The translations under genes were made by a program, and so were the position numbers. Shown piece after piece: positions 25,542 through 32,308 of a stretch of DNA of 64,000 nucleotides. Numbering within the stretch: position 1 is the stretch's first letter; every line of letters starts with the position of its first letter. The notes under the pieces were generated by a model. That model was not told the DNA's origin, did not search any database, and was given only the letters and a program-made list of their open reading frames with translations. The DNA lies in the sequence record ON529858.1; one strand, 5' to 3'.

Positions 25542-25602
25542 ACCTCTCGTTAAGACCTCCCCCGTATAAGGGGGAGGTCACCACTGAGAAGGAGTTCTCG
25601 CC

Positions 25603-25986
25603 ATGCCTCTCCCCGCCCACCTCTTCGCCTCCGATGACGGCGGCCTGTATGACACCCGCTCGCCGGACTGGTCTAAGGGCAAGCCCCTGCGCACCGGCTA
25701 CCAGGGCGCCGCCGCCCAGATCGAAACCCTCGCCCAGGTCAAGGCCGCGCTGCGCGCCGGGGGCTTCACCTTCCCCGGCGCCTACCCCCTGTATTTCGTC
25801 ACCCGCGACGGCTGCGCCCTCTCGTTTGACGCGGTCCGCGCCGAGTTCGCCGAGGTCTGCGAGGATTTCCTGGCGGACGTTTCCACCGGCTGGCGGATCA
25901 CCGGTTGCACCGTCAACTATGAGGACTCGGACCTGACGTGTGAACACACGGGCGAGAAGATTCCGGCCGCATACAGCGACGAGTAA
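25603..25986 (+). CDS. early hypothetical protein (cassette)
   Basis: AAGGAG RBS; FPGAYPLYFVTRDG...VNYED motif typical of phage hypotheticals. Confidence 0.75.
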   Translation: MPLPAHLFASDDGGLYDTRSPDWSKGKPLRTGYQGAAAQIETLAQVKAALRAGGFTFPGAYPLYFVTRDGCALSFDAVRAEFAEVCEDFLADVSTGWRITGCTVNYEDSDLTCEHTGEKIPAAYSDE

Positions 25987-26049
25987 CGATCCGTTAAGAC
26001 CTCCCCCGTATAAGGGGGAGGTCACCACCGGCAAGAGAAGGAACCCCGA

Positions 26050-26610
26050 ATGCCCGAGACCGTCACCCAGGCCGAGGCCGCCACCGTTCCCGAATACGCG
26101 GAACACGCTGAGCCGCCCGCCTACGCCGTCGCCGTCTGGACTGATGACGTGATCACCAATCACGGCGGCGACCTGCCCCTGTGGGGCCTGGACGTGCCCG
26201 TGCCCGCCATCGGCGCCGACATCGTCGTGACGATCAACCGTTGCGGCCTCGCCTACGTCACCGGCTATTTCGTGCAAGATGGCTGGCTGGGCGTGCTCTG
26301 CACCCTGCGCAACCCGCCGGAATGGCATGTGAAGCAGAACAAGGGTGATCCCAAGGGCCACGCCTTCGCCCCTGAGTTCCGCCCGGCCGTAGCCGCCGAC
26401 CTCGCCGACCCGCCGGTCGAGACGGGCGTCGCCCGCGCCGTCCGGCTGGGCTACACGGTCGAGTCGACCACCGATGAGGCGGACGGCGTGCCGATCTTCC
26501 GCTACGTCCGGCCGAACGGCGAGCCCGATTCCGAATGGCTGTCGAGCCTCGCCAAAATCTGGGAAGGCGCCGGGTCGGATTCTTTTCTTTGGGAAATGGA
26601 CCACGGGTAA
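26050..26610 (+). CDS. early hypothetical protein (cassette)
   Basis: AAGGA RBS; stop inside junction. Confidence 0.7.
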   Translation: MPETVTQAEAATVPEYAEHAEPPAYAVAVWTDDVITNHGGDLPLWGLDVPVPAIGADIVVTINRCGLAYVTGYFVQDGWLGVLCTLRNPPEWHVKQNKGDPKGHAFAPEFRPAVAADLADPPVETGVARAVRLGYTVESTTDEADGVPIFRYVRPNGEPDSEWLSSLAKIWEGAGSDSFLWEMDHG

Positions 26611-26671
26611 CCTCTTGTTAAGACCTTGCCGGTAGGTTGGCTTCATCAACCACCGGCAAGGAGCCAACCCC

Positions 26672-27031
26672 ATGCGATCCACCCTTTCCAATCTGGTCAT
26701 CGCCCTCAAGACCGCGATCGCCGACAACCGCCGCCTGCCCCGCCCGGCCGATCCGGTCGAGGCCGCTGTCATCGACGGCGTCGGCGCGCTTCAGGCCGAG
26801 GCCCTGGAGAAGGCCGAGGGCCTGCTGGCGGGCCTCGCCTATGAGATCGAGATCGCCCAGGCGGGCGCCCTCATCGGCCTGCTCCGCCTCGACACCCCCT
26901 GCCCGATCAAGGCGGACGCCCAGGCCAAAGCCATCCGCGCCGCCCTCCTGCCCGACGGGATCGAGGCGACCCTCTACGCGGTCGAGATCAACAAAAGCCG
27001 GGTGATCGCTGTCGCTCAATACCCCCGGTAA
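26672..27031 (+). CDS. early hypothetical protein (cassette)
   Basis: AAGGAG RBS; stop inside junction. Confidence 0.7.
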   Translation: MRSTLSNLVIALKTAIADNRRLPRPADPVEAAVIDGVGALQAEALEKAEGLLAGLAYEIEIAQAGALIGLLRLDTPCPIKADAQAKAIRAALLPDGIEATLYAVEINKSRVIAVAQYPR

Positions 27032-27096
27032 CGATCCGTTAAGACCTCCCCCGTATAAGGGGGAGGTCACCACCGTTTGAGAAGGAACCCGCCCAG

Positions 27097-27462
27097 ATGA
27101 GCAAGATCACGATTGAGGAAATCGAAAGCTGGACCGCCGAGGTCGAGCGCCCGCGCCAGACGCTGGAGGTCATTTTCCAAACGCTGGGCTATGACAACGG
27201 GACCAAACGAGTCGACGCCTATGTGATCGTCAAGCGCCCAGGCGGCTACGGTCGCGAGGCGGGCGTCGCCCGTGTCGTCCACGCCAGCGGCTGCTACACC
27301 TACGGGCTGGCCCTGATGTCGCTGGAGCGCCAAATGCGCGCCGCCCGCTTCGCCCCCGCCGCCCAGGCCCTGGTCGAGGGCTTCGCCGCCCAGGCCCGGC
27401 GCCAGGGGATGGACCGAACCGAGTTTCCGAAAAGCGTCACCCTCATTCCGACCGAGCGGTAA
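27097..27462 (+). CDS. early hypothetical protein (cassette)
   Basis: AAGGA RBS; stop inside junction. Confidence 0.7.
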   Translation: MSKITIEEIESWTAEVERPRQTLEVIFQTLGYDNGTKRVDAYVIVKRPGGYGREAGVARVVHASGCYTYGLALMSLERQMRAARFAPAAQALVEGFAAQARRQGMDRTEFPKSVTLIPTER

Positions 27463-27524
27463 CGGTCTGTTAAGATTTGGCCTGTAGGGTCTGATCATCA
27501 ACCCCGGACAAGGAGTCCCCGCCC

Positions 27525-27818
27525 ATGACTAAGCCCGCCAAGCCCCGCAAGCTGACCCGCGCCGAACTGGCCCGCAAGGTGCTCGAACTGGAGGGACAAC
27601 TGGCGTCGTCCTATCACTTCGCCACCCTCGAACTGCACAAGGCGGGCGACAACCTCATGGCGTCCGGCGTGCTCATCTCCCTGACCGCCCTAGGCGGGCG
27701 CGAGATCATCAAGCCCGTGGTGATCCGCGACGGCCTGAGCGCCGCCACCATCGCCGCCCTGCGCGCCGATATGGTGCGCAGCTATGAACTGGCGACCTCT
27801 TTTAAGCCCAAGGCGTAA
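27525..27818 (+). CDS. early hypothetical protein (cassette)
   Basis: AAGGAG RBS; stop inside junction. Confidence 0.7.
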   Translation: MTKPAKPRKLTRAELARKVLELEGQLASSYHFATLELHKAGDNLMASGVLISLTALGGREIIKPVVIRDGLSAATIAALRADMVRSYELATSFKPKA

Positions 27819-27880
27819 CCCTTCGTTAAGACCTCGCCTGTAGGGTGAGGTCATCAACCGCTGGACAAGGAGTCCCCCGA

Positions 27881-28435
27881 ATGCCGACCGCCAAACAAAC
27901 CGCCCAGGCCATCGCCCTGACCCCCTCGACGGGCGAGGCCGTGGCGATGATCCTTCACGCGCTCGACATCGGCCGTCTGTATTTTCAGCGCGAGGTCGAG
28001 GCGACCGACTCGCTGTCGAATAAGGAACTGGCCCAGGTCCGGCTCGACACATTCGAACGCGCCTCGATCATCGCCCGTGAATCCGGCGTGCTCATCACCG
28101 CTGAAGGCGAGAGCGTCGCGGCCATTCTCGACGATCTTTTCAACGCCATGCCTACCCCCGGAACCGACAAGCTGTCAAAGCCGTGGAACCGCGCGCTGAA
28201 GCAAGCCCGCCGCCCGCGCTACCGCTTCAAAGCCGGGACCGGGAGCGCCACCGTGACCGATACGCTTAAGGGCGTCTCCGCCACCACCCGCCACCCCGGA
28301 CCGGTCGCGGCGGCGCGCGAGGCCTTCGCCAATACCGACTCGGGCGCCCACGTCACCCCGGCCGGGGTCGGGGTCTGCGGACTGGATGAGGACAAGGCCC
28401 GCTCATTCCTCGCCACCGCTGAGCGCGGCCGGTGA
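27881..28435 (+). CDS. early hypothetical protein
   Basis: AAGGAG RBS, ATG 27881. Confidence 0.7.
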   Translation: MPTAKQTAQAIALTPSTGEAVAMILHALDIGRLYFQREVEATDSLSNKELAQVRLDTFERASIIARESGVLITAEGESVAAILDDLFNAMPTPGTDKLSKPWNRALKQARRPRYRFKAGTGSATVTDTLKGVSATTRHPGPVAAAREAFANTDSGAHVTPAGVGVCGLDEDKARSFLATAERGR

Positions 28436-28728
28436 GGGCCGGTCAAGTCAAGGTCGCGGTCCCCCTCTCGTTTGGGGCCTGCGGCTATGTCTGGCGCCCG
28501 AACAAAACCGCCGCCGGGATGACGAAAACCGACGCCCGGCGCGGTCAACGGCGCGGCCCAGGCGAGGGCGTCGGGCTCAAGCTGGCGGTGCGCGGGACCA
28601 CCGACGCCCTGGATATGGCCCTGGTTTTCTGCATCACCCGCCGAAACCCGGACTATCTGTGTCTGAACAAATCCGGCAAGGCCCGGCTGGCGCGCCTGAG
28701 AAAACGCCGCGCCGTAACCCTTCGTTAA
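28432..28728 (+). CDS. early hypothetical basic protein
   Basis: GTGA overlap; stop is the second half-site of the junction. Confidence 0.55.
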   Translation: MRAGQVKVAVPLSFGACGYVWRPNKTAAGMTKTDARRGQRRGPGEGVGLKLAVRGTTDALDMALVFCITRRNPDYLCLNKSGKARLARLRKRRAVTLR

Positions 28729-28778
28729 GACCTTGCCGGTAGGTTGGGCTCATCAACCACCGGCAAGGAGCCGCGCCG

Positions 28779-28895
28779 ATGAAACCGACCCGCAACCCCG
28801 CCGCGAAGGCCCTGGCCTCCGCCGCCTACCGTCAACAGGTCGTCAAGCCCCGCAAGGGTCGCGGCGCCTACTCTCGAAAGGGAAACCGCCCATGA
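28779..28895 (+). CDS. ArfA-like 38-aa peptide (not in ORF track)
   Basis: MKPTRNPAAKALASAAYRQQVVKPRKGRGAYSRKGNRP; own promoter, AAGGAG RBS, ATGA overlap with next gene. Confidence 0.75.
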   Translation: MKPTRNPAAKALASAAYRQQVVKPRKGRGAYSRKGNRP

Positions 28896-29374
28896 CCGCC
28901 CTCGACACTGTCAACACCTCGTTTTTCTTCGTCGTCCTGCGCGACGCCCAGGGCGTCCACCTCGCCACCGAAACCGTCTGGTGCCCGCCCGGCTCGAAAC
29001 CCGCCGACATCATCGGCGACGCCTGCTCTTTCTTCCAAGTGGACGAAAACGGCGCCTATGACGACGACGTGATCGCCGCCGGTGTCATCGACCTGTTCGG
29101 CCCCTTCGATCAAGGTTCGGCCCTGACCGTCAAGGTCGCCCGCCCGGACGGCGACGACTTCGCCGACTTCCAGATCGTCCCCGAGACCACCGCCGAACCT
29201 TTCGACTATATGGGCCAGATCATGGCCTATGAGGCGGGCGAACTGGACGACGACGACGTCGACACCCTGTTCCAATATCTGGTCGACACCGGCCTCGCCT
29301 GGAGCCTGCAAGGCGCCTATGGGCGCACCGCCCAGGCCCTGGCCGCCGCCGGTCGAATCACCCTCCCCGAGTAA
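28892..29374 (+). CDS. early hypothetical protein (two-domain)
   Basis: ATG 28892; C-terminal IMAYEAGEL...FQYLVDTGLAWSLQGAYGR domain common in phages. Confidence 0.7.
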   Translation: MTALDTVNTSFFFVVLRDAQGVHLATETVWCPPGSKPADIIGDACSFFQVDENGAYDDDVIAAGVIDLFGPFDQGSALTVKVARPDGDDFADFQIVPETTAEPFDYMGQIMAYEAGELDDDDVDTLFQYLVDTGLAWSLQGAYGRTAQALAAAGRITLPE

Positions 29375-29435
29375 CGAACCGTTAAGACCTCCCCCGTATA
29401 AGGGGGAGGTCACCCACCGAGAAGGAACCCAGATC

Positions 29436-30152
29436 ATGGCCGCTGGAGCCACAAAAGAACAGATTGCCCGCGCCACCCGCACGGCGCTGCAAAAGATCGC
29501 CAAGGCGTCCGGCGGGACCTATACCGCCGCGACCACAAAGACCCGCGCTTTCGCCAGCGGGACCACGAACGACGGCCTGCGCTGGATCGCCAACGTCGGG
29601 AGCGGCAACGCCTCGAACGGTCAAACCTTCCTGAGCCTGAACATTTCCGTCAACGGATCGTTTGGCGAAGCCATCACCCGCACCGGCTATTTTGAAGGCG
29701 ACGTGACCGTCGCGGGCGTCTGCCTGTTGTTCCGCCTGATCAACGGCTATCCCCTCGAACTGGACGGCTCGCCCGGCGACTTCCGCCTGCTGCTGGCGGC
29801 GCCCGGCGTCTCGAACTGGTTCGCCGACCGCTACGCCCTGACCTTCCGGGGCGACGGTTTCGACGTGCTGGACAAGGCCCGCAAAATGGTTCGGACCTTC
29901 ACCGCCGCCGAGGCCGATCAAGAGGCCCGCCGCCTCGCCCTGGCCTTCCGTTCGGACCTGCGCGCCGAGACGATGCCGACCCACTATGACGCGGAAACCT
30001 ACGCCCGCGTCCGGGCTTCTGAGGCCGCCTTGTCGCAACGTCGCGGCGCCGGGCTGGACGCATGGGGCGACGACCGCCTCGCCGTCTATCCCGACGGCTG
30101 GACCGGCGCCCTGACCGACTGGAGGCTGGCCCATGGCCCCCGTGAGAACTGA
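29436..30152 (+). CDS. early hypothetical protein
   Basis: AAGGA RBS, ATG 29436. Confidence 0.7.
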   Translation: MAAGATKEQIARATRTALQKIAKASGGTYTAATTKTRAFASGTTNDGLRWIANVGSGNASNGQTFLSLNISVNGSFGEAITRTGYFEGDVTVAGVCLLFRLINGYPLELDGSPGDFRLLLAAPGVSNWFADRYALTFRGDGFDVLDKARKMVRTFTAAEADQEARRLALAFRSDLRAETMPTHYDAETYARVRASEAALSQRRGAGLDAWGDDRLAVYPDGWTGALTDWRLAHGPREN

Positions 30153-30309
30153 CGGCCTCGTGCCGCTGGAGGTCTGCGCCTCCGCCCTCGAACTCGCCAA
30201 GCGCGATGTCGAGGCGCGGCTGGCGCGTGACCCGAACGCCCACGACGCCGACGTCCTGCGCAGCCAGCGCGACACCTACGCCCGCGCCCTGAGCGTGGCC
30301 TATTCCTGA
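30133..30309 (+). CDS. early hypothetical protein, 58 aa (not in ORF track)
   Basis: GGAGG RBS; MAPVRTDGLVPLEVC... Confidence 0.5.
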   Translation: MAPVRTDGLVPLEVCASALELAKRDVEARLARDPNAHDADVLRSQRDTYARALSVAYS

Positions 30310-30398
30310 AAAAATCTCGACTGCCGGCGCTGCGGTAACTTCTCGTTAAGACCTCTCCCGTATGGTCTCAATATCAACCCCGCCAAGGAGACCACCGA

Positions 30399-30839
30399 AT
30401 GCCCCGCATCACTCAAGCCGCCGCCTTCGTCGCCGCCCACCTGCCCGCGCTGCTGGGCTATGTCGAGGCCGACAAGACCGCCACCCCGCACAAGCCCGGC
30501 CCGGCCTTCACGGGGTCGAGCAACTGCCAAGCCAATATCGAGCGCGACTATGCCCGCCGCAACGGCGGCCATTGGTTCGACAAAGAGACCTTCCGGTTTT
30601 TCCGGACCACCATCACGGCCGGTTTCTGGGACGTGCCCGAGGCGGGCGTCACCCTCTTTGTGACCGGCGAGCGCGACACCTGCCAGCCGGGCCGGAGCCG
30701 GGCCTATACGGTGCGCGCCTACTTCTGGAACGGCGCCGACATCGAAACGATTGGCCCGTTCAACGAAACGAGCCAGCGCGTGGCGGAGCAAGCCGTGCCC
30801 CTCTTCGTCGCCGCCCTGAAAGAAAGGGCGGCGGCGTGA
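30399..30839 (+). CDS. early hypothetical protein
   Basis: AAGGAG RBS; GHWFDKETFRFF motif typical of phage hypotheticals. Confidence 0.75.
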   Translation: MPRITQAAAFVAAHLPALLGYVEADKTATPHKPGPAFTGSSNCQANIERDYARRNGGHWFDKETFRFFRTTITAGFWDVPEAGVTLFVTGERDTCQPGRSRAYTVRAYFWNGADIETIGPFNETSQRVAEQAVPLFVAALKERAAA

Positions 30840-31051
30840 GCCGGGTCCTGGTCGGGACCGTCCGCGTCCTGGACGGTCAAACCGTCTGCGTCCGCCCTGA
30901 CGGCCGCGTGCATGAAGTCGGCGGCAAGGTCTCGACCTTCCCCGTTTTCGGCGGCCTGCGCCCCTATGATGAGGGCAAGCAGATTTGGCGCGTGGCGGGC
31001 GTGACCCAGATGGAAAACGACTCGCAGCGCGACCGCCGCCTGGGCCGCTAA
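30836..31051 (+). CDS. early hypothetical protein
   Basis: GTGA overlap; TAA stop inside junction. Confidence 0.6.
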   Translation: MSRVLVGTVRVLDGQTVCVRPDGRVHEVGGKVSTFPVFGGLRPYDEGKQIWRVAGVTQMENDSQRDRRLGR

Positions 31052-31113
31052 CCCTTCGTTAAGACCTCGCCTGTAGGGTGAGGTCATCAACCACCGGACA
31101 AGGAGTCCACGCC

Positions 31114-31581
31114 ATGACCACCAAACTGATCGAGGTTCGCGGCCCGACCGCTGAAGAGGCCGCCGCCCTAGGCGGCGACGTGGTCTTCGTCCGCCGCGAC
31201 CGCGCGGGCGTCGAGACCAAAATCCACGCCAGCGTGTCGCACGAGTCGTGGTCGCAATGGGGCGCCGACCGTGACCTGCTGGGCGAAAATCAAGAGGCCG
31301 TCGAAAGCTGGCGGCGCGGCCTGGACGACGTTCTAGGGCTGATCGACGAATCGGACTTCGCCGACGAACCCGAAGAGGCCGAGTCCGGCGATTGGGAAGT
31401 CGGCGACCGGGCCTATGTGGGCGCCGAGGGTGACCGGGGCGAGATCATCGAGATCATCACCACCGGCCTGCCCGACTCGGCGCGAGGCCGCGCCCGCGTC
31501 AAGATGCAACTCGACTATTGGCGCGTCGGCGAACTCTGGGAAGGCTCCATCGACGACATCGACACTCTGGACGACGAGTAA
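31114..31581 (+). CDS. early hypothetical acidic protein
   Basis: AAGGAG RBS; stop inside junction. Confidence 0.7.
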   Translation: MTTKLIEVRGPTAEEAAALGGDVVFVRRDRAGVETKIHASVSHESWSQWGADRDLLGENQEAVESWRRGLDDVLGLIDESDFADEPEEAESGDWEVGDRAYVGAEGDRGEIIEIITTGLPDSARGRARVKMQLDYWRVGELWEGSIDDIDTLDDE

Positions 31582-31642
31582 CGATTTGTTAAGACCTCGC
31601 CCCTAGGGTGAGGTCATCAACCCCGGACAAGGAGTCCCCCAG

Positions 31643-32308
31643 ATGACGACCACCCCGAACTTCTCCACCCCCTCGCTCGCCGTCGCATTCTTCGCCAGCG
31701 CGGGCGGCGCCGCCTTCCTGAAGGCCGTGCTGGACCTGCGCGCCGCGACCGTCGGCATCGACGACGAACCGGACATTTCGAACGCCCTTGTCATCGAGAT
31801 CGGCGCCGCCAAGAACGCGCTCGACGACGTCATCGGCCTGCTGGCCGAGGCGGGCGTGCAAATCGTCATCGCCGCCCCCGGCGTCTATGACAACGTGCCG
31901 CAATCCATTCTCGACGCGGTTTTCAACCCGCCGAAGGAACTGGCCGCCGCTGTCGCCGACATCAACGCCGGGGCCGCCCTCAAGACCACGCTGGAGCCGG
32001 GCGACATCGGATTCGCCCAGGCGTCCGGCTACGGCATCGGCCCGGCGAGCGAGACCGGCGACGGCCGCGAAGGGTTCTGTTTCTTCGCCCCTGACGGCCG
32101 CCGCTCCGCCGCCTTCACCCTGCAACTGACGGCATGGCTTGCGGCCGTGCGCGAGGTCGAGGGCCTGCCCTACGCCGTCGGCGAGCACGGCCTGCCGCCG
32201 CTCGCCCGCTTCGCCACCGAGGCCGAGGGCGCCGCCTATATCGACACGCTGGACCCCGTCAAGCGAGAGGCTGGCGGCTACTATCTGGACGGCCCGGCGG
32301 ATGACTAA
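31643..32308 (+). CDS. early hypothetical protein
   Basis: AAGGAG RBS. Confidence 0.7.
   Translation: MTTTPNFSTPSLAVAFFASAGGAAFLKAVLDLRAATVGIDDEPDISNALVIEIGAAKNALDDVIGLLAEAGVQIVIAAPGVYDNVPQSILDAVFNPPKELAAAVADINAGAALKTTLEPGDIGFAQASGYGIGPASETGDGREGFCFFAPDGRRSAAFTLQLTAWLAAVREVEGLPYAVGEHGLPPLARFATEAEGAAYIDTLDPVKREAGGYYLDGPADD

Follow-up and report, generated by a model that had tools for sequence, protein, structure and literature searches.

The described system closest to the peptide analysed here is the ribosome-rescue factor ArfA, a protein that is disordered off the ribosome. The E. coli representative, also called YhdL, has 72 residues, belongs to Pfam family PF03889 and is found in PDB entries 5MGP, 5U4I and 5MDV. 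It needs no more than 47 of these residues, but loses activity when cut short after Met40 (PMC5378476). At the decoding centre residues 15-24 are helical; Q27-E30 supply RF2 with an additional beta-strand, and a KH motif is in contact with the entry channel (PMC8012679). The basic segment of the protein occupies the empty mRNA tunnel, Thr7 and Lys8 contact h44, and Leu19, Leu24 and Phe25 contact Trp319, Val198 and Phe217 of RF2, with residues 2-16 becoming ordered only once RF2 opens (PMC5378476). The A18T variant recruits and binds RF2, but activation is abolished by a steric clash; in a complex of ArfA with T. thermophilus RF2, RF2 is in the closed conformation, and the pairing of ArfA with RF2 can be species-specific (PMC8012679).

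Two other small, release-factor-dependent rescue peptides, ArfT of Francisella and BrfA of Bacillus, also insert a basic tail into the mRNA tunnel, and are considered to have evolved independently (PMC6299226, PMC8012679). ArfT, of ~40 residues, has a KKGGSTNKK tail, uses RF1 or RF2 and is not regulated in the manner of arfA (PMC6299226, PMC8012679). ArfA has been presented as a backup system under tmRNA control and stated to be restricted to some beta- and gamma-proteobacteria (PMC8012679). In a nucleotide-HMM survey, arfA was present in 0 of 2,376 alphaproteobacterial genomes, and C. crescentus, which is without ArfA, relies on ArfB (PMC11633108). In phages, gp10 of Citromicrobium phage RXM has been mentioned as ArfA (PMC8953757), and gp30 of pelagiphage HTVC027P has been named ArfA and is expressed early and late in infection (PMC12753301). 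No functional study of a phage ArfA or mini-ArfA was found in the searchable literature.

A short gene of phage Bajun and its junction element

The DNA analysed here (the window, 64,000 nt; record coordinates equal window coordinates plus 62000) belongs to Brevundimonas phage vB_BgoS-Bajun (ON529858.1, 207 kb, Dolichocephalovirinae), whose host is B. goettingensis LVF2; positions 27000-31000 of the window are 99.9% identical to that record. The ORF of interest lies on the + strand at 28779-28895, with ATG at 28779 and TGA at 28893-28895, and its 38-residue translation, MKPTRNPAAKALASAAYRQQVVKPRKGRGAYSRKGNRP, is exactly the sequence given in the initial annotation. The ORF had there been called unannotated. 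ON529858.1, however, already holds it as CDS BAJUN_01750 (UTC29805.1, 'hypothetical protein'); it is thus unnamed rather than unannotated. We call its product mini-ArfA. In PHROGs the peptide falls into phrog_20887 ('unknown function'), and NCBIfam returned no match to it.

The signals for translation that had been proposed for this gene can be read directly from the sequence. A Shine-Dalgarno sequence, AAGGAG, is present at 28765-28770 (+), with an 8-nt spacing to the ATG (8-9 nt at neighbouring annotated genes), and the stop codon overlaps the start of the next gene in an ATGA at 28892-28895 (+). The next gene, BAJUN_01760 (28892-29374, +), encodes 160 residues assigned to DUF7417 and phrog_3908, and is described for context only. 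The ATGA overlap is kept in two related contigs, L093 and L094, with a different gene following in each: DUF7417 in Bajun (28892-29374), an unrelated 158-aa protein in one relative (L093:1756-2232) and DUF6926 in the other (L094:525-827). Because the downstream gene differs among relatives, the DUF7417 gene is not a fixed partner; a functional link between the two was rejected, and BAJUN_01760 is probably not a functional partner of mini-ArfA.

L093, a metagenomic contig of a Bajun-like phage with ~85% nucleotide identity and the same gene order, also provides the evidence that the ORF is coding. Fifteen codons are changed between the two copies, 13 synonymously and 2 non-synonymously, and of the 18 nucleotide differences 13 affect the third codon position of the mini-ArfA frame. 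This codon-position pattern rules out the other reading frames and strands as coding. Comparison with the sister Brevundimonas phages gives dN/dS values of 0.15-0.46, synonymous sites being close to saturated. The ORF at 28779-28895 is a real gene under purifying selection.

The gene is preceded by a junction element (28724-28778, +) made up of GTTAAGACC, a hairpin, TCATCAACC, the Shine-Dalgarno sequence and the 8-nt spacer, which is repeated upstream of other genes. The general cassette spans ~58 bp and reads GTTAAGACC, a GC-rich hairpin, TCAyCAACC, AAGGAG, 8-9 nt and ATG. At least 10 copies, on the + strand only, precede genes or gene pairs between 25549 and 31588, within the stretch 25549-31646. 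The count of 10 was obtained with a flexible regular expression; a fixed-spacing pattern gave 0 matches, and an exact 39-mer of the element occurs in only 2 copies. Here the TAA stop of the upstream gene (28726-28728) falls within the GTTAAG of the element, and among the junction copies the upstream stop codon often lies within or just before GTTAAG. The initial annotation had proposed a promoter at this junction. The repeated element is there, but a sigma-70 consensus is absent at every junction in a scan whose model was sigma-70 and whose scope stops short of Caulobacter-type promoters, and a sigma-70 promoter was dropped on this basis. The element could be a phage-specific promoter or a site of RNA processing or stability.

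Within the element, an RNA hairpin at 28731-28768 (+) has an MFE of -28.6 kcal/mol, which 200 shuffles place at z = -3.35. The first four Shine-Dalgarno bases, AAGG, are paired with its 3' arm, and by sequestering part of the Shine-Dalgarno sequence the hairpin could limit translation of mini-ArfA. The outer stem is kept in L093 and the loop differs. In two junction copies, at 26625-26663 and 28732-28770, a long-stem variant (CTTGCCGGT...ACCGGCAAG) stands in place of the short hairpin seen elsewhere, and in both it pairs with part of the Shine-Dalgarno sequence.

Homology to ArfA and anatomy of the peptide

A profile match to ArfA, the absence of which had been set beforehand as grounds for abandoning the ArfA reading, was found by several routes. 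The peptide scores 31.4 bits against Pfam PF03889 (gathering score 25.5, E = 1.3e-7), with residues 12-36 on model positions 18-42 of 44, while nine shuffled versions and the reversed peptide gave 0/10 ArfA matches in Pfam. A phmmer search of all PDB sequences returned ArfA chains only, at E ~0.004. With a query profile built from nine close phage and metagenomic relatives, hhalign aligned phage residues 4-36 with residues 12-44 of E. coli ArfA at 96.8% probability (E = 2.9e-10). The E. coli ArfA fragment used for alignment in the initial annotation agrees with the protein translated from NC_000913.3, our E. coli reference, against which the ungapped alignment with 13 identities was reproduced; in this register, adding 8 to a phage residue number gives the E. 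coli one. Among 20,000 shuffles of the peptide the highest count was 11 identities, and 13 was never reached. By these sequence comparisons, the 38-codon gene of Bajun is a genuine ArfA homologue.

In this register the Bajun peptide covers E. coli residues 9-46, one residue short of the 47-residue construct that is sufficient in E. coli. Codons 7-22 (28797-28844, +) correspond to E. coli residues 15-30, and would supply the equivalents of the decoding-centre helix and the RF2-recruiting beta-strand. PAAKALASAA is colinear with helix 15-24, and QQVV faces the QRVE strand with two of four residues identical. Codons 23-38 (28845-28892, +) correspond to E. coli residues 31-46 and encode the basic segment KPRKGRGAYSRKGNRP, a putative occupant of the mRNA tunnel. 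Its presumptive tunnel core, KGRGAYSRKG at residues 26-35, matches the KGKGSYxRKG segment of ArfA. In E. coli numbering the two proteins have in common N14, L20, R26, Q27, V29, K31 and the core K34-G-x-G-x-Y-x-R-K-G43. It had been proposed that the phage peptide lacks most of the N-terminus. That is an overstatement: the missing part is confined to E. coli residues 1-8, whose contacts in the active state are with h44 and S12, and residues colinear with 15-24 and 27-30 are present.

The differences from E. coli ArfA are concentrated elsewhere. Lys10 of Bajun stands at the position of E. coli Ala18, the hydrophobic patch L19/L24/F25 is replaced by A11/A16/Y17, and the KH motif by NR. The Bajun peptide therefore departs from the E. 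coli-type activating features, namely a small residue 18 and the L19/L24/F25 patch; these features are, however, traits of E. coli-type ArfA, and other members of the Pfam family need not have them.

Mini-ArfAs in phages and in SAR11

A profile search of 5.8 billion proteins, with an alignment headed by the 60-aa RXM homologue, yielded more than 3,700 matches at E <= 0.001. The top matches are mostly 35-40 aa long and have PF03889 as a precomputed domain; JGI gives several of them the name ArfA. In IMG/VR, a mini-ArfA relative is encoded on at least 215 viral contigs. Judged by length and motifs, the Bajun peptide belongs to a large class of 35-45-aa mini-ArfAs. The class is already known to databases and already named in sister phages. 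Conservation was counted over 205 distinct mini-ArfAs. Little or no variation is seen at the tunnel residues K26, G27, G29 and R33; N6, A9, L12 and V22 on the RF2/decoding side are near-invariant, and K or R is the usual residue at the A18-equivalent position. For 36 of the 205 sequences a motif filter had fixed the allowed residues, including N6, A9, L12, V22, G27 and G29; the same pattern holds in the remaining 169.

Among cultured phages, tblastn found ArfA-type copies in eight Brevundimonas phages. Five of the eight are already annotated as alternative (or putative) ribosome-rescue factor. In Papperlapapp, Kabachok, Bambus and Kikimora the gene is annotated ArfA; these copies are 36-38 aa long, share the architecture of the Bajun peptide and are 64-73% identical to it. 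The Bajun and Gurke copies carry the label 'hypothetical protein' only. Further copies were found in Citromicrobium phage RXM ('ArfA'), Caulobacter phage Cr30, Ochrobactrum phage OC and Roseobacter phage CRP-212, and all cultured phages with such tblastn copies infect Alphaproteobacteria. RXM gp10 (60 aa) and OC p093 (65 aa; 'putative ArfA' in the record note) differ from the Bajun peptide in having extra C-terminal tails.

ArfA-like ORFs are unannotated in Cr30 (L006:1135-1299), in CRP-212 (L010:780-917), where the ORF falls inside the span of the large annotated CDS gp38, and in Agrobacterium phage OLIVR5 (L009:795-941), where the annotated genes are on the other strand. Gaps or errors in the annotation of these records are possible. 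In T4-like phages, the ArfA or DUF7230 gene lies within one or two genes of an RNA ligase gene (Cr30; PhT2 rnlB) or of RNase H (OC). This neighbourhood hints at a response to RNA damage, but shared T4-like synteny may explain it.

DUF7230 (PF23876) is a related case. The Bajun peptide scores 15.8 bits against this family, whose gathering score is 27, and membership was rejected. An Acinetobacter phage homologue scores 49.4 bits (E = 4.9e-13), and Sinorhizobium and Agrobacterium phage versions match weakly. Confident members are small proteins of Acinetobacter T4-like phages, such as that of PhT2 (L007:801-926); similar small ORFs lie at L011:792-932 and, in Agrobacterium phage OLIVR5, at L009:795-941. 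DUF7230 has in common with mini-ArfA its size and an N-terminal half of the form K-R-N-P-x-A-K-A...VVK, and the two families cross-match weakly. It is without the KGxGxY core, which is replaced, for example, by DRTKYDRK. In sequence terms DUF7230 has the look of a divergent sister family of ArfA that has gone unrecognised.

Mini-ArfAs are also cellular. The genome-scan matches listed, at least 80 loci, come mainly from Pelagibacteraceae. The SAR11 genes, found across loci L014-L092, encode 35-46 residues and end in their own stop codon (for example, L069:5992-6099 and L031:5992-6126), and a 35-aa SAR11 protein passes the Pfam ArfA threshold. Among the matches listed, gene order on both flanks is collinear in 51 of 53 loci; the neighbourhood is of a housekeeping kind and contains genes for a PfkB kinase, a symporter and a photolyase-related protein. 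Together, the collinearity and the Pfam result make mini-ArfA part of the core chromosomal gene set of SAR11, contrary to the statement that ArfA is restricted to beta- and gamma-proteobacteria (PMC8012679) and to the count of 0/2,376 in Alphaproteobacteria (PMC11633108). The SAR11 proteins resemble the Bajun peptide in length class, in the NPxAKxL...KGKGS(Y/F)xRK pattern and in their own stop; they differ in being cellular and AT-rich, and are 44-60% identical to the Bajun family.

Proposed function and comparison with known rescue factors

Bajun carries other genes that bear on translation. A permuted, two-piece type alpha-proteobacterial tmRNA lies outside the window (L097:16406-16838; record 192406-192838), with Rfam scores of 87.9 bits (RF04321) and 57.4 bits (RF01849); its tag is read by ARAGORN as VAANDNAPFAVREAIAA, and tRNA-Met genes flank it. 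No tRNA or tmRNA is found within the 64,000-nt window. Since the phage has its own tmRNA as well as mini-ArfA, it carries two separate ribosome-rescue components. It also encodes, likewise outside the window, an RtcB RNA ligase (L095:17923-19161), a small RelA/SpoT-like GTP pyrophosphokinase (L095:14100-14684), a peptide deformylase (L096:10324-11001) and at least 26 tRNAs. RtcB, the GTP pyrophosphokinase, the deformylase and the tRNAs form a broad translation-maintenance toolkit.

From its sequence we infer that mini-ArfA would bind the ribosome, recruit RF2 and activate it. The explanation that we consider probable, with a fair margin of doubt, is that mini-ArfA is produced constitutively and independently of tmRNA, and that during infection it recruits RF2 to ribosomes stalled on truncated mRNAs and so frees them. 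It would be made whenever its mRNA is translated, whatever the tmRNA status. The basic C-terminal half (KPRKGRGAYSRKG) would enter the mRNA tunnel left empty when a ribosome stalls at the 3' end of a truncated mRNA, and the N-terminal half (NPAAKALASAAYRQQVV) would sit in the A site and recruit host RF2. Recruitment is envisaged to occur by strand addition through QQVV and to lead to peptidyl-tRNA hydrolysis, so that the protein is released without being tagged. The ribosomes thus freed would be those trapped on decaying or cleaved mRNAs, the products of host-mRNA turnover or of RNA-cleaving defences. Mini-ArfA would act alongside the phage tmRNA, the RtcB RNA ligase and the tRNA set, and the phage would gain added rescue capacity in a host lineage from which ArfA is reported to be absent.

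In support of rescue through RF2 we count the PF03889 and hhalign homology, the coding evidence, the length close to 47 residues and the constraint on N6, A9, L12 and V22. The core gene in SAR11, the phage tmRNA, RtcB, deformylase and tRNAs, the expression of the pelagiphage gene and the reported absence of ArfA from C. crescentus and the surveyed alphaproteobacterial genomes are counted in its favour as well. Counted against it are Lys10 at the A18 position, the changed L19/L24/F25 patch, the absence of residues 1-8 and NR in place of KH, as are the species-specific pairing of ArfA with RF2 and the hairpin that sequesters the Shine-Dalgarno sequence.

Some of these departures would be expected of a non-activating binder, which would occupy the empty tunnel and perhaps hold RF2 closed without hydrolysis, competing with host tmRNA-SmpB or ArfB or sequestering RF2, and would in this way modulate or inhibit ribosome rescue in the host. 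Lysine at the A18-equivalent position, the missing eight N-terminal residues and the weakened L19/L24 hydrophobic contacts all fit such a binder, and E. coli ArfA(A18T) provides a precedent in recruiting RF2 without activating it (PMC8012679). We nevertheless regard this as unlikely. The mini form containing Lys or Arg is a conserved core gene in SAR11, which makes an inhibitor role hard to reconcile; N6, A9 and L12 are near-invariant; and blocking trans-translation seems counterproductive for a phage that invests in its own tmRNA. Where the initial annotation had left a choice between a rescue factor and a blocker, the evidence leans towards a rescue factor.

A rescue factor could also be active with another partner specificity, using RF1 as well as RF2 as ArfT does, or needing another phage factor. 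The N-terminal architecture is unlike that of E. coli ArfA, ArfT is likewise a peptide of ~40 aa that uses RF1 or RF2 (PMC6299226), and mini-ArfA is translationally coupled to a downstream gene. But the coupled gene differs among relatives, residues colinear with the Q27-E30 strand are retained, and the sequence matches ArfA and not the KKGGSTNKK-type tail of ArfT (PMC6299226), so that a different partner appears quite improbable. That the ORF is a chance reading frame or untranslated sequence in a GC-rich genome, with a likeness to ArfA in basic composition only, is a reading to which we give almost no weight and which is effectively refuted: the peptide is very short and K/R/G-rich, and long spurious ORFs on other frames overlap 28779-28895, but shuffled peptides are without an ArfA match, the substitutions relative to L093 are biased to third positions specifically in the mini-ArfA frame, and both length and motifs recur in hundreds of homologues.

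A wider proposal goes beyond rescue through RF2 in Bajun and is advanced only tentatively, since we think it rather unlikely to hold as a whole. Mini-ArfAs may be distinct, unregulated RF2 activators of ~35 aa with a different N-terminal mode of activation, marked by Lys at A18 and the absence of residues 1-8. Phages of Alphaproteobacteria might deploy them with tmRNA and RtcB against RNA-cleaving abortive infection or against the effects of their own destruction of host mRNA; alternatively, mini-ArfAs might modulate host rescue in a dominant way. At 38 residues the peptide can be made by chemical synthesis, which makes in vitro tests straightforward. If active, it would be the smallest natural RF2-recruiting factor, and A18 and the first eight residues, considered critical in E. 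coli, would not be universal. Ribosome rescue would then join the functions that phages carry with them, which may matter where defence systems target RNA.

The comparison with E. coli ArfA extends to regulation. The hydrophobic C-terminal tail of E. coli ArfA and the internal RNase III/terminator hairpin of its gene are both missing in Bajun. A true TGA at codon 39 falls at the equivalent of just past E. coli Gly46, ahead of the regulatory hairpin and the hydrophobic tail, and no arfA-style hairpin is found within the ORF, where the coding RNA structure is not unusual (z = +0.31). Regulation of the enterobacterial type, with a non-stop mRNA, a dispensable tail and repression by tmRNA, is ruled out by these three observations; given the true stop codon and the unremarkable fold of the coding RNA, tmRNA cannot control the gene in the E. 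coli manner. The tmRNA-independent form that had been suggested for the peptide thus fits the sequence. In size the Bajun peptide is similar to ArfT, but its motif is the ArfA-type KGxGxY, and membership of ArfT, compared through its description in PMC6299226, was rejected. A naturally minimal ArfA with its own stop codon, in place of the longer tmRNA-controlled protein of E. coli, is widespread on phage genomes, above all in phages of Alphaproteobacteria.
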